The notes under the pieces are model-generated. The model did no database searches. It saw only the letters and a program-made list of their open reading frames with translations, and had not been told where the DNA came from. Source: Scyliorhinus canicula (lineage: Eukaryota). From it: a stretch of DNA of 64,000 bases. Shown here one piece after another: positions 31,505 through 39,627 of the stretch. The first letter of the stretch is position 1. Each line of letters begins with the position of its first letter. Location: the NCBI RefSeq assembly GCF_902713615.1, contig NW_024055490.1, forward strand, positions 467,262-531,261, read 5' to 3'. The position numbers were made by a program, and so were the translations under genes.

Positions 31505-32397
31505 GGCCTCAGTGCGCAGTAATACACCGCGGAGTCTGTCAGCTCTGTTTTAGACACATTCAGCAGGACGGTGCGGATTGTATCATTGAGCTCCGCGGAA
31601 AAACGGTCCCCTGGGTATCTCTCTGTGTTCCCGGTGTATTTACTAATCTGCAGCAGGTACTCCATGGATCGACTGGGATACTGACGGTACCAGAATAGAT
31701 AAAGATTGCTCGTGCTTGTAGCTGTATAATTACAGAATAACTGAACATCTTTTCCTTCACTCACTGTGACAGCAGCCGGTGTCTGAGAAACGGAATCTCC
31801 TCGACAATGTCCTGTAAGAACCCAGAGTGATTTTCAATTAAACAATGCGAATTCACTGAATCTATACCGCAGAATCGTCCCGTCATCCTGAACAATAGCC
31901 TCAGAGAGTGAACAGACAGCAGAACAGAAATATATATCACACAGCTTAGTGGCTGTAACGGGAAATTGTTTGGAAATTGTAAATCTTTTAAGTCCGGTCT
32001 TTCTAACGAGGTCCGGTCCTCAGCTTCAGTACTCTAACTGGAAGCGGAAAGTACTAACGATCTGTGGGTTTGACAGTCCGCTGTTTGTCAATGTCATTCA
32101 CGAGGAGCAGAGAAGCTTCAATCTCAGCCCAACTCTTCCGCTCTCATTCCCTTGGGAAATGTGCCGACTTCCAGCAAACAGCGTTCTGTGCTGAGACCAG
32201 CAAGATCCGGATGACTTTTCGAAGTTGGGGTCAATCTATTTGTCCGACCACCCACACCCACCCCCTTGTATTGAGCGACCTGCCTGACAGAATGTCATGT
32301 ATGGAAAAGCTGTGACAGAAAGAGTTGTGCAACTTGTGAACTTACCGGTTAAAAGAGCGGCCGCTGTGAGGAATAAATACACAGTAACAGGCGACAT
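31505..32397 (-). CDS. TCR alpha/delta-type V gene, apparently functional (V-f)
   Basis: Leader 32346-32397 MSPVTVYLFLTAAALLT, GT-AG intron, V exon 31505-31811 GHCRGDSVSQ..C..WYRQYP..DSAVYYCALRP; RSS 31466-31504 CACAGAG-23-ACAAAAACT. Confidence 0.93.
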
Positions 32398-33265: not shown

Positions 33266-33374
33266 TGCAGGTCAAGTGGGGTTGCAGGATGAAGGCTGGA
33301 TCTGGACCAAGGTAGGGTGCTCATTGAAAGGGTTGGTGCAGACGAGATGGGCAAAATGCCTGACCCAGCACTTC

Positions 33375-35045
33375 AGCCCAGCCTGACCCTCCCACTCCAG
33401 TCCAGCCTGACACTCCCACTGAAGTCCAGCCTGACACTCCCGCTCCAGTCCAGCCTGACCCTCCCACTCCAGCCTGACCCTCTCACTCTAGTCCAGCCTG
33501 CCCCTCCCACTCCAATCCAGCCTGACCCTTCCACTCCAGTCCAGCCTGACCCTCCCACTCCAGTCCAGCCTGACCCCCCACTCCAGTCCAGCCTGACACT
33601 CCCACTCCAATCCAGCCTGCCCCTCCCACTCCAATCCAGCCTGACCCTCCCACTCCAGTCCAGCCTGACCCCCCACTCCAGTCCAGCCTGCCCCTCCCAC
33701 TCCAGTCCAGCCTGACCCTCCCACTCCAGTCCAGCCTGACCCCCCCCCGCTCCAATCCAGCCTGCCCCTCCCACTCCAATCCAGCCTGACCCTCCCACTC
33801 CAGTCCAGCCTGACCCCCCCCACTCCAATCCAGCCTGCCCCTCGCACTCCAATCCAGCCTGACCCTCCCACTCCAGTCCAGCCTGACCCTCCCCCACTCC
33901 AATCCAGCCTGACCCTCCCACTCCAATCCAGCCTGACCCTCCCACTCCAGTCCAGCCTGACCCCCCCCCCCCCCACTCCAATCCAGCCTGCCCCTCCCAC
34001 TCCAGTCCAGCCTAAACCATCCACTCCAATCCAGCCTGACCCTCCCACTCCAGTCCAGCCTGACCCCCCCCCCCCCACTCCAGTCCAGCCTGACCCTCCC
34101 AATCCAGTCCAGCCTGTCCCTCCCACTCCAACCCAGCCTGACCCTCCCACTCCAATCCAGCCTGACCCCCCCCCCCCCCCCACTCCAATCCAGCCTGACC
34201 CTCCCACTCCAACCCAGCCGGACCCCCCCCCCCCCACTCAACTCCAGCCTGACCCTCCATCTCCAGTCCAGCCTGACCCTCCCACTCCAGTCCAGCCTGA
34301 CCCTCCCACTCCAACCCAGCCTGACCCTCCCACTCCAGTCCAGCCCGACCCACCCGCACCAACCCAGCCTGACCCCCCTCCCACTCCAGTCCAGCCTGAC
34401 CCTCCCTCTCCAGACCAGCATGACCCACCCACTCCAGTCCAGCCTGACCCCCCACTCCAGTCCAGCCTGACTCTCCCACTCCAGTCCAGCCTGACCCCCC
34501 ACTCCAGTCCAGCCTGACCCTCCCACTCCAGTCCAGCCTGACCCTCCCACTCCAGTCCAGCCTGACACCCACTCGAGTCCAGCCTGACCCTCCCACTCCA
34601 GTCCAGCCTGACCCCCCCCCCCCACTCCAGTCCAGCCTGACCCTCCCTCTCCAGTCCAGCCTGACCCTCCCACTCCAGTCCAGCCAGACCCTCCCACTCC
34701 AGTCCAGCCAGACCCTCCCACTCCAGTCCAGCCTGACCCTCCCACTCCAGTCCAGCCTGACCCTCCCACTCCAGTCCAGCCTGACCCTCCCACTCCAGTC
34801 CAGCCTGACCCTCCCATTCCATTCCAGCCTGACCCTCCCACTCCAGTCCAGCCTGACCCTCCCACTCCAGCCTGACCCTCCCACTCCAGTCCAGCCTGAC
34901 CCTCCCTCTCCAGTCCAGCCTGACCCTGCCTCTCCAGTCCAGCCTGACCCTCCCACTCCAGTCCAGCCTGGCCCTCCCACTCCAGTCCAGTCTGACCCTC
35001 CCTCTCCAATGCAGCCGGGCCCTCCCATTTCATTCCAGCCTGACC
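33375..35045. repeat. 24-bp minisatellite (CCCTCCCACTCCAGTCCAGCCTGA)n, roughly 70 copies
   Basis: 8-aa periodic translations (GVGGSGWT, EWEGQAGL); variable poly-C tracts. Confidence 0.97.
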
Positions 35046-35908
35046 CTCCGCCGTCCGATCCCACTCGACACCTGAGCCTCCCATTCCCTCCTCTTTGTTC
35101 CTTCGGATGCCCCCTGGTCTGACCCGGCCCCATCTTGTGATCCGACGCACGTCCGGTCTGAGCAAACCCCCTCCCTTGCTGTTCGATCACGGCGCCCCCC
35201 CCCCCCACCCCCGTCCCCGTCCGATACCCCACCTTGTCTGTCCCACCTGCCTTTTTAATTGTCCCTTGAAACACTTCCCTTCCGCCTGGTAGTGCCGCAA
35301 AAATCGGTGCTTCTTACCTCGCTGCACCTCAGCTGCCCCACACTGGACAGAGATAGTCAGCTTCTTGATTAATAAGGGAGCCAGGGTAATGCGGAGAAGG
35401 CAGGAGATTGGGTATGAGAAGAACATCAGCTGTGTTTGACCGGCGGAGCAAACGTGATGGGCCAAATGGCCTCATTCTGCCCCAATGTCTTATGGCCTTA
35501 GGTTCCAGAAATGGGACAGGTATTTTTAAGCGCACGTTGTAGTGATTGTAGCTGCCACCAGAGGGCAGTGGGAGACTGGGTGAGTATCTTTAGTGAAGAA
35601 AATGTGATGGAGGGAGCCAATGCGGAAACAGAAACATTATTTTAACACTCATATGAAACTTGAATCTTTAAAAAAGTTATTTATTGTCATGTGTTTTCAC
35701 TGCTGCTATTACTGTTGGGATGTTACAAATGTCCGATAGAGAGACGAGTTCGCATTTGACGGGTTCAAATTGGAAAATGATATAAGGACTCTCATCAGGA
35801 TCTTCGTCTTCTCAAACCGACTGGTCAGATTTGCAGGAAGAGTAGGTGAGCAAAAGGCACCGCTATCGTTGGACAGCAGACATGAAGGTGAGAATTAGTC
35901 TCTGAGCT

Positions 35909-35983
35909 GTTTCTGTAGTGTAGTGGTTATCACATTCGCCTAACCCACGTGAAAGGTCCCCGCTTCGAAACCCGGCAGAAACA
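35909..35983 (+). pseudogene. tRNA-Val(AAC) pseudogene
   Basis: Val body with 2-nt insertion in the anticodon loop and two T-stem mismatches. Confidence 0.82.
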
Positions 35984-36001
35984 TCAAGTTCTTCACATTT
36001 A

Positions 36002-36180
36002 GGGGCTGGTTTAGCACACTGGGCTAAATCGCTGGCTTTTAAAGGAGACCAAGGCAGGCCAGCAGCACAGTTCAATTCCCGTACCAGCCTCCCCGAACAG
36101 GCCCCGGAATGTGGCGACTGGGGCTTTTCACAGTGACTTCATTTGAAGCCTACTTTGAAGCGATTTTCATTTATTTTTTT
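36002..36180 (+). mobile_element. Short SINE (GGGGCTGGTTTAGC family)
   Basis: tRNA-like head GGGGCTGGTTTAGCACACTGGGCTAAATCGCTGG..AGTTCAATTCCC. Confidence 0.82.
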
Positions 36181-36548
36181 CATCTCCCGCAATAACATAG
36201 CTGTAACAGGAAGGAGGGAATACATGTTCTCATTCGTTACTTTTTCGTGAACTGCAACTTGTCGGCAGTTCAAGTGAATAATTGCACCGTGTCCTTACCA
36301 GTATCCACCGCCAGAGAGCAGAGTGATGTATGAAAAGTATTTAAGGTGGGAGGACAGGTGCGTGTTCAGAGGCAGTGCAAGCTGGTGTCAGTGTGAAACG
36401 TGGAGACTGGGTGGTTAAACCCTAAGAAATGCTCAGCTCATTTATTTAGTTCAACAGAAACACGTCGCTGAGCTCCCGGTTAATTTTTCAGAATATAGTT
36501 TTCACCTCCCGGTTCTGAGCCGAGCTCGGTATTGCGTGTGAACTGATA

Positions 36549-36881
36549 ATGCTTCGGGTTCACACAGGCATTTTGCTGTGTTTCACGCTGATCTGCACGG
36601 TGGTGAGCGGAGAAGATGAGGTGCAGCAGCTCCCTGGGTGGATGGTTGTTAGTGAAACGGGTAATGTGTCCATGAACTGCACCAGCAGCAATGCATTTAA
36701 CATCGTACGCTGGTACAGACAGTACCCGAACCAGGCACCCCAGCATCTGGTGATGGCCACAAGAGGAACCGATCAACACGGGAGGATTACAGCTTCAATC
36801 GGTGGAGACAACAAGCTCAGTATCCTGACTGTGAGAGAGGCGCATGTTACAGACGCTGCCACCTATCTCTGTGCCGTGAGG
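36549..36881 (+). CDS. Intronless leader-V TCR gene, apparently functional (V-h)
   Basis: MLRVHTGILLCFTLICTVVSG continuous with EDEVQQ..C..WYRQYPNQAP..DAATYLCAVR; RSS 36882-36920 CACAGTG-23-ACAAAAACC (perfect). Confidence 0.9.
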
Positions 36882-38039
36882 CACAGTGTAACTAACAGAG
36901 GGAGACCCCATACAAAAACCTGCACCGTCTTACAAAGCCGCTTCACTGTGGCTGCAATATCGGCGTTTCATGAAGCGGGGTGTTGTATTCCATGGGAAGC
37001 GGGAATGAGAACAACACGTAAATAGAAGCGGAAGAGTTAAAGAGGGAGAAATATGAAGAGAGTTGGAAATATAGTCGAAGAATGGAAAGTGTTAACATAT
37101 TAACGGAATGAGTGAAAGAACAGCACGGAACATTCTGTAACAATGAAAAGTGAAGTGGAAAAAAGTGAAAAATAACGATTGTGATGCATAGAGTTAACGA
37201 TCAGTTAAAATCATAAATGAAGTGACTCAGAAATAATGTAAAACGGCCTTAACATCATTCAACCTTCCTTGATAATTCGACATTTTATGGTTTGAAAAGC
37301 GGCTTCTGAAGGAGTGCCATTGGATATTGCTCTATAAGTAAATTTCCACCCATTCCACCATTCTGCCCATGTAAATCCTCCCACTGGGAACCCCGCCAGA
37401 GGGCGAGGTGGTCCCAAAGTATTTCCTGTTATCAACGTCAAACTATCGACAAAGGACTCGCGGTAACGCTGCGAGCTGCCGTCCTGACAACAGCTTGTTC
37501 AAACTCTGATACACATTTTCTGCCCTGTGATAGTGGAGATCTTTCCCAGTTTGTTATTGCTGCCTCAGCTGGGGTCCCGGGATCTGTATTTCTGTAACCT
37601 TTTCCTGAAATCCACAACGAACATCAAACTGGATTGTTTTTCTGTTTGTCAGGGTGTGGTGAGTACGAGGGCTTCGAATGTTTACAATTTAGATAAATGA
37701 CTTGGAAGTAATAGTTGCTCAATCTGCTGACCACAGAGAGAGATGTAGGAAAGTAAATGTTGAAGAGGACCTTAGGGGCCTATAAAAGGGCATGGATAGG
37801 GTAAGTGAATGGACAAAGATCTGGCAAACAGAATATAATGTGGAAAATATGAAATTATTAATTTTGGGAGGTAGACACACAGAGAAGCTGATTATCTGAG
37901 GAATTGCAGTGGGCTGAGAGTCAGAGGGATCTGGGTTTCCGAGTGCATGAATGACAAACGCCAGTTTACAGGTGTAGCAAATAATGAGAATATTGTTGTT
38001 CATTGTGAGGTGAATTCATCACAAAAACATGGAGGTTAT

Positions 38040-38567: not shown

Positions 38568-39069
38568 GGCTGCAAGGCACAAAGATACAGTGCGCGATCA
38601 GACATCAGCGTGTTGCCTATCATTAGCTCGCTAATCTTGGCAGTTTTATTTAAGGTAGCTGAAACACGATCGGTGATATCAGGGTGTCTGTAAATGTTCT
38701 TCCCCAGAACACGAAGAATGTATTGTGGAGCCTTCCCGGGACTCTGACTGTACCAGTACACATACGGGTTAGAAGTGCTTGTCTTCAAATTGCAGGTTAG
38801 TGTGACATTACTTTCTTCTTCAATCTTTACTTCAGCATCCGGCTGCTCCACTGTGTCCTGGTGGCTCCAATCTGACGTAAAAATTAGATTAAGAGCAACA
38901 ATCAATATCAGCTTCAAATTGATCAACTTAATCTTCAACATCACTATTGTTTTCACCAACAATAACGTCAGGATTAGAGCAGCCAGGAGGAGAATGGAGT
39001 TTTACTGGGAAGGAAATACTTACTGAGAAGTGAGATAATGATGAGCATCTGACCGAGCCGGTTCTCCAT
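38568..39069 (-). CDS. TCR V gene, family 2, apparently functional (V-i)
   Basis: Leader 39024-39069 MENRLGQMLIIISLL; V exon 38568-38871 WSHQDTVEQ..C..WYSQSPGKAP..DRALYLCALQP; RSS 38530-38567 CACACTG-22-ACAAAAACC. Confidence 0.92.
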
Positions 39070-39627
39070 CATCCTTCCTGAGTCTGGAACTCTGCAGTGA
39101 GAGGAATCCTCTGTCAGAGGCAAAAATACCGATCCCCGTCACACTACACTGCTGATCCAGCCAATGGCAGCGACAGCAACTTCTCCACTGACACAATTGT
39201 GTCAGAGCGAAAGCAGCAACCGCAAGCTGTGGGCGGGGATACCGCAGACTCAGAGTGAGGCTTGTGCTGACTCTCAGCTGCACTCGGAGCGGAAATAGGA
39301 AGGGATGAATCTGCAGAAGACTGTGACCATCCTGCACCAGCTCACTGTTCAAACCACTGAGAAGAAATCGAACGGGAGGGACATGAAGCCCATTTAAACA
39401 CGGCTTCTGACACTAGACACTGTGTCACTGGATCTGCAAATAGTCTGCCTGTCAATGTAGAGCATCAAAAGAGCAGAAGGATAAATACATCTGCTAATGT
39501 TTGTTCTTCGTGGGCCTGGGATGAAATTAACCCGGCTGATGGAGGTAAACCTCTATTAACTGTATGAGTGTGCGTAAATTCTCATCAATCTGTTAAACTG
39601 TACTGATGAGTATAATTTAGTACTTAT

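Follow-up and report, generated by a model that had tools for sequence, protein, structure and literature searches.

A leader split between two exons counts as the universal mark of an antigen-receptor V gene, V-gene finders are designed around it, and a 2025 paper on sharks describes this layout as "canonical ... found in all AgR genes" (PMC12227049). Departures from it are nevertheless on record in chicken and opossum. In chicken, leader and V region occupy a single exon in the V-alpha-1 (TRAV1) and V-gamma-1 (TRGV1) families, this being the case for all but three TRAV1 genes and for most TRGV1 genes (PMC10972964); TRAV1-26, for instance, carries a contiguous 78-nt signal-peptide feature, while TRAV2 and TRAV3 are split (PMC10972964 supplement). 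The unsplit leader of V-alpha-1 and V-gamma-1 has been called an "unusual characteristic" (PMC8456604), and many single-exon members of the two families have been assigned no more than ORF status (PMC10972964). In opossum, TRMVj is without a leader intron, and the origins proposed for it include intron deletion or retrotransposition of a spliced transcript (PMC2275272). Both precedents, the bird TRAV families and marsupial TCR-mu, had been named in the original prediction for the locus described here, and both turned out to be real. For sharks, the literature searched, which was a limited library, yielded no description of V genes with an unsplit leader.

The stretch of DNA analysed, 64,000 nucleotides of the Scyliorhinus canicula genome and hereafter the window, holds about twelve TCR-type V segments distributed over both strands. 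The segment at 36549-36920, hereafter the target, is very probably a germline, apparently functional V-alpha-type TCR V segment belonging to a shark V family that would lack the leader intron altogether. Reading the ORF on the + strand, an uninterrupted frame runs from the ATG at 36549 to 36881 and translates as MLRVHTGILLCFTLICTVVSG followed immediately by EDEVQQLPGWMVVSETGNVSMNC...WYRQYPNQAPQHLV...TDAATYLCAVR, the mature part beginning EDEVQQ. The leader MLRVHTGILLCFTLICTVVSG (36549-36611; 63 nt, 21 residues) is contiguous with the V region and combines a basic n-region, a 10-residue hydrophobic core with a hydropathy of 2.71, and V-x-G at positions -3/-1. The start-codon context (36537-36548, + strand, gaactgata at the boundary with the ATG) has a purine at -3, and "TGATAATG" or a close variant of it is present in all four germline family members. 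The V region itself (36612-36881, + strand, 90 codons) encodes an intact V-set domain, apparently of V-alpha type, with the first Cys in "SMNC", the Trp in "RWYRQ" and the second Cys in "TYLC" (Y-x-C motif); relatives carry Pfam PF07686. When compared with solved structures, almost all of the best 60 matches listed are TCR alpha chains, headed by human TRAV12-3 and 12-2 (E 6e-16). The corresponding lists for the neighbouring segments V31 and V46 are dominated by multi-domain scFv entries and give no guidance on their class.

The V region is followed on the same strand by a recombination signal sequence consisting of the heptamer CACAGTG (36882-36888), which is invariant in all four aligned germline family members, a 23-nt spacer (36889-36911) and the nonamer ACAAAAACC (36912-36920), which reads ACAGAAACC, ACTAAAACC and ACAAAAACC in the relatives. 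As a whole, this 23-RSS (36882-36920) shows 0 mismatches to CACAGTG-N23-ACAAAAACC and is the sole perfect match in the 64-kb window, shuffled sequence yielding a mean of 0.91 matches with 3 mismatches permitted. Neither a J-like FGXG motif nor a poly(A) was found 3' of the RSS. V-set residues, an open frame and a 3' 23-RSS together identify the target as an unrearranged germline segment; a germline-joined or retrocopied V of the opossum TRMVj or catfish joined TCR type was considered and rejected, as the target keeps its RSS intact and has neither a J nor a poly(A). The original prediction, made from the letters and their reading frames, thus holds for the basic anatomy: a hydrophobic leader running in frame into the V domain without an intron, a full-consensus RSS, and no joined J or poly(A).

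Compared with the described systems, the target resembles chicken TRAV1 and TRGV1 in having leader and V in one exon and a germline 23-RSS, in sharing this layout with its whole family, and in lying at a locus whose other families have two exons. It differs from them in leader length, 63 nt against 75-78 nt in four single-exon TRAV1 entries, in its perfect RSS, the RSS or the signal peptide being poor in many of the chicken genes, and in its occurrence in sharks rather than birds. The absence of the leader intron is likewise shared with opossum TRMVj, although that gene is germline-joined to D and J and has no RSS, whereas the target is unrearranged with a complete RSS. The canonical split-leader TCR or Ig V gene, composed of L-part1, a phase-1 intron, an 11-nt L-part2 and the V domain, agrees with the target in V domain, RSS, total leader length and the "VSG" leader end, but differs in possessing the intron.

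The expected position of the phase-1 leader intron lies between 36600 and 36601 (36594-36611, + strand; TGC ACG G / TG GTG AGC GGA, the slash marking the boundary), and the target has neither an intron nor an AG there: the bases preceding the boundary read "gcacg" in place of the AG canonical at 11 nt before the V region. In this respect too the earlier reading, in which the site of the usual 11-nt L-part2 lacked an intron, is borne out. An in-frame ATG and a whole signal peptide are contiguous with the V region, with no L-part2 acceptor between them. The frame is open back to an ATG lying exactly 63 nt 5' of the V region, which equals the usual 52 + 11 nt and is therefore compatible with precise intron loss. 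A donor-like hexamer, GTGAGC, is present inside the leader at 36603-36608, corresponding to Val-Ser codons; the idea that it is a relic donor was rejected, since it is absent from three germline relatives.

Six neighbouring V genes of the window provide a real contrast, in line with the original prediction. In V31, V38, V43, V46, V49 and V54, a hydrophobic leader exon ends in phase 1 at a GTAAGT or GTGAGC donor; the intron that follows is 85-534 nt long and leads to a pyrimidine tract, an AG and an 11-nt L-part2, and the frames of their V exons shut within 12-17 codons upstream without reaching an ATG. Thus V31 (31507-32397, - strand) has its leader exon at 32397-32346, a 534-nt phase-1 intron, and an 11-nt L-part2 with the V exon at 31811-31507, while V38 (38570-39072, - strand) has its leader exon at 39072-39024, a 152-nt phase-1 intron with donor GTAAGT, and then an 11-nt L-part2 and V exon. 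The leader comparison is drawn from these six genes; V18, V53 and V56, as well as the pseudogenes V12 and V29, are uninformative for the leader.

Another way of reading the target would place a true leader exon further upstream, spliced in phase 1 into the in-frame AG at 36566-36567 (+ strand; cacacAG followed by gc) or elsewhere in the leader, with the ATG at 36549 being incidental. Indeed, the phase of this AG is 1, and four germline family members all retain it, but 24 of the 63 leader positions are likewise invariant. Its pyrimidine tract is weak compared with those of real acceptors in the window, and its use would produce a 44-nt L-part2 against the 11 nt of the six split-leader neighbours, leaving it an unsupported candidate for a cryptic acceptor. 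The 2.5 kb upstream of the target yielded no leader exon that is hydrophobic, ends in phase 1 and has a good donor; the candidate that could be put forward, ATG...CAG/GTATTT at 35492-35519, is non-hydrophobic.

More decisive for this question are the relatives of the target, which were sought by a scan of 1.8 billion representative proteins; in three clusters the alignment to the query begins at residue 1 or 3. The closest, with 66% identity to the target, is a germline ORF on a 1-kb contig that runs through its own RSS (P0012; locus L002, JGI metagenome 3300026616, contig Ga0262470_19728). Because of its closeness to the window gene, this contig is taken as shark DNA, evidently host DNA in a microbiome sample; its 5' end consists of a repeat-like stretch of the kind found upstream of the window V gene. 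A gene model of the bamboo shark Chiloscyllium punctatum (P0015; locus L001) has 55% identity, and a nurse shark V-D-J-C cDNA (P0017) has 56% and begins MSQIYRFLLLLATLIYTEVTG followed directly by EDEVMQLP. The cDNA in turn led to a second C. punctatum gene (P0160; locus L003), which occupies a single 429-nt range. In all, the protein identities of the unsplit relatives span 48-66%. In the databases searched, no TCR V-gene name is attached to any of the four germline family members: two are entered as "hypothetical proteins" without a name, a third is likewise a nameless ORF from a metagenome, and the product of the window gene is without a record.

The three germline relatives share one anatomy, consisting of "TGATAATG" or a close variant, a leader of 21-22 codons, the V region, CACAGTG, 23 nt and a ACAAAAACC-like nonamer. 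All three are colinear from the ATG, and the trait follows the family: L001, L002 and L003 are unsplit, while the V31, V38, V43, V46, V49 and V54 families and the V31-like gene of L003 (L003:12928-13215) are split. This V31-like bamboo shark gene lies 2.6 kb from the unsplit member and keeps a leader intron of 714 nt; its leader exon reads MSPGSMCLFLAAAAVLT, against MSPVTVYLFLTAAALLT in the V31 gene of the window. The neighbourhood of an unsplit gene and an intron-keeping V31-family gene is conserved between the bamboo shark and the window.

Of particular value for the placement of the true leader is the nurse shark cDNA. Its 21-residue leader starts at the same Met, is colinear with the germline leaders of the target and L003, and includes the codons upstream of the AG at 36566-36567. 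From this colinearity it follows that the mature leader of the family should be the very sequence that adjoins the V region in the genome; in this nurse shark relative, splicing adds no coding sequence from further upstream. The result that was to refute the original prediction, a cDNA splicing an upstream exon into the AG near 36567, is hence contradicted at the level of the family. The four-way DNA alignment of the germline members leads in the same direction. Between -150 and -13 upstream of the ATG, identity is 38% with gaps in 43 of 164 columns, whereas the last 12 nt before the ATG show 65% identity and the 63-nt leader 64%, both with 0 gap columns; the corresponding values are 71% with 2 gap columns for the V region and 79% with 0 gap columns for the RSS. 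The start context and an indel-free frame are therefore kept in four germline genes, in contrast to the sequence further upstream, and the retention of leader length and frame at such divergence is what would be expected of neither an intron nor an untranslated stretch. Taken together, these observations make an upstream leader exon very improbable. A non-coding 5' UTR exon may nevertheless lie upstream of the target ATG.

As to when the intron disappeared, the original prediction offered two possibilities: a precise loss through recombination with cDNA of a germline transcript, or an ancient single-exon V lineage. It had also called for a phylogeny, and in the maximum-likelihood tree built here with shark and Callorhinchus milii sequences the five unsplit sequences form one clade (100/99), apart from the split-leader families of the window. 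Within it, a subgroup (96/89) unites the bamboo shark sequences with that of the nurse shark, and the window gene and L002 branch outside this subgroup. As the unsplit layout is shared with bamboo shark genes and with a colinear nurse shark cDNA, it should be older than the split of the two shark orders concerned, and the intron was probably lost before carcharhiniforms and orectolobiforms diverged. The ancient lineage thus fits, within sharks, with unsplit family members in two orders; the family may have lost its intron by way of a cDNA or through a genomic deletion. A fresh cDNA-mediated loss in the target gene, on the other hand, finds no support. The leader length of 52 + 11 nt is exactly what a precise excision predicts; but a recent event confined to the target, whether retrocopying or recombination with cDNA made from a germline transcript, would have to be reconciled with the same layout in the bamboo shark genes, in L002 and in the nurse shark cDNA at 48-66% protein identity, as well as with the missing poly(A) and the retention of the native RSS and of the V31-family neighbour, and is barely conceivable.

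The opposite possibility is that the unsplit layout is much older, either predating the split of sharks and chimaeras or being homologous with the single-exon chicken V-alpha-1 lineage. The nearest outgroup in the tree consists of nine V models of Callorhinchus milii, which are 41-48% identical and sister to the unsplit clade (91/98). Several features could be read in favour of greater age: the C. milii models open upstream to an in-frame Met, their leaders show some likeness to that of the target family (e.g., KFHKQIVLCL vs RVHTGILLCF), and chicken TRAV1, in a comparison by eye, begins QVQQ and has "DAA.Y.C" like the target family. Yet each of the nine C. milii models has, as the two residues before "VSG", one of P/T/S/A/Q and then one of G/D/E. 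A conserved NCAG/G acceptor 11 nt before the V region would encode just such a pair, which suggests that chimaeras keep the leader intron and that the loss took place on the shark stem. It should be noted that these relatives are protein models (including A0A4W3IEC8 and A0A4W3GW07), from which intron status is deduced through the protein alone. Identity to chicken TRAV1-26 amounts by eye to roughly a third, a level that does not exceed the identity to the window's split families. An origin of the layout before the parting of sharks and chimaeras, or in common with birds, is consequently unlikely.

The reading preferred here, a shark family of V-alpha type with an undivided leader, implies a simple route to expression. 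A single exon, ending at the consensus 23-RSS, would hold the 5' UTR and start codon together with the complete 21-residue signal peptide and the V region; RAG would join the target V through this 23-RSS to a partner with a 12-RSS; transcription would begin just upstream of the target ATG; and the sole splice then required would be that from J to the constant exons. The canonical phase-1 intron would have been lost by the family after the parting of sharks and chimaeras and before the carcharhiniform-orectolobiform split.

Some hints as to expression of the target copy come from a word index of sequencing runs. Over 36400-37000, the share of sampled words present in five small same-species runs, which come from two studies, is 0.26-0.46, although these runs may be DNA. 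The interval 36480-36600 contains 91 possible 31-mers, of which 88 either cross the AG at 36566-36567 or lie 5' of it. Of 8 that were sampled, 4 occur in each of two same-species runs and 2 in each of another two, and here as well the runs may be DNA. If the small runs are RNA, the result would hint at transcripts whose 5' ends lie some tens of bases before the ATG and in which the AG is not used for splicing. Three large runs with a second species label (X25-X27, organism B) contain 3 of the 8 sampled 31-mers of 36480-36600, and the label appears to denote a close relative carrying a near-identical leader region. In protein searches, no same-species TCR chain using the target V was found, even with the length window widened to 295 aa.

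These data bear on the possibility that the target is an intact but unused ORF gene, silent or never rearranged, in which the unsplit leader would be functionally meaningless. The chicken gives this idea some substance, many of its single-exon genes in both families being of the ORF-only class. Against it stand the intact frame with its hallmark residues, the plausible signal peptide and the perfect consensus RSS, together with the leader-region words in four small same-species runs from two studies and the expression of a family member in nurse shark, so that an unused gene is quite unlikely; we infer that the target copy itself is expressed.

Less straightforward is the chain to which the family contributes. 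The nurse shark cDNA, the only cDNA found for the unsplit V family, joins its V region to "YYFGAGTKLTVLE", with a "DR" D-like stretch and a beta-type J, and to "HPVKFPKVTILKPSPAELREKRKATVV", a constant-region stretch identical to the constant-region start of "T-cell receptor beta chain [Ginglymostoma cirratum]". In the tree, P0161, a bona fide V-beta of the nurse shark, falls very far from the target family, and the germline members in the window and in the bamboo shark appear to sit among alpha/delta-type V genes. The cDNA may stem from an ordinary V-beta family that happens to be of V-alpha type, from a rearrangement in trans, or from a chimera formed during cloning. It is tempting to speculate that the unsplit V-alpha-like family serves TCR beta in sharks, through V segments of the alpha/delta array joining D-beta/J-beta in trans or through seeding of the family into the beta locus, but this is a tentative idea and rather doubtful at present.

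The target is a member of an old shark V family with a rare, already known layout, and is of use to comparative immunology and to annotation. A whole shark V family without a split leader, stable since before two orders diverged, would mean that the loss of the leader intron is tolerated, and unsplit leaders are now seen in sharks besides birds and opossum TCR-mu. Shark genes of this kind will be overlooked or wrongly modelled by annotation pipelines that insist on an acceptor 11 nt 5' of the V region. The family can moreover serve as an intron-free standard of comparison in a single locus, against which the role of the leader intron in V expression or in somatic hypermutation of shark TCR could be assessed.

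Several further features of the surroundings may be recorded. A tandem array of 1.7 kb (33358-35049), built of about 70 copies of the 24-nt C-rich unit GCCTGACCCTCCCACTCCAGTCCA with 83% matches, lies 1.5 kb upstream of the target V and accounts for a local GC skew of -0.33. Closer to the gene, about 450 bp upstream, a degenerate tRNA-like sequence (35913-35985) is immediately followed by a tRNA-derived SINE-like element (36000-36110). Between 11852 and 56628, V29, V36 and V43 are on the + strand and the nine other V segments on the - strand; V38 (-) and V43 (+) belong to one family and point away from each other, and with such mixed orientation some V genes of the window would need inversion to rearrange.
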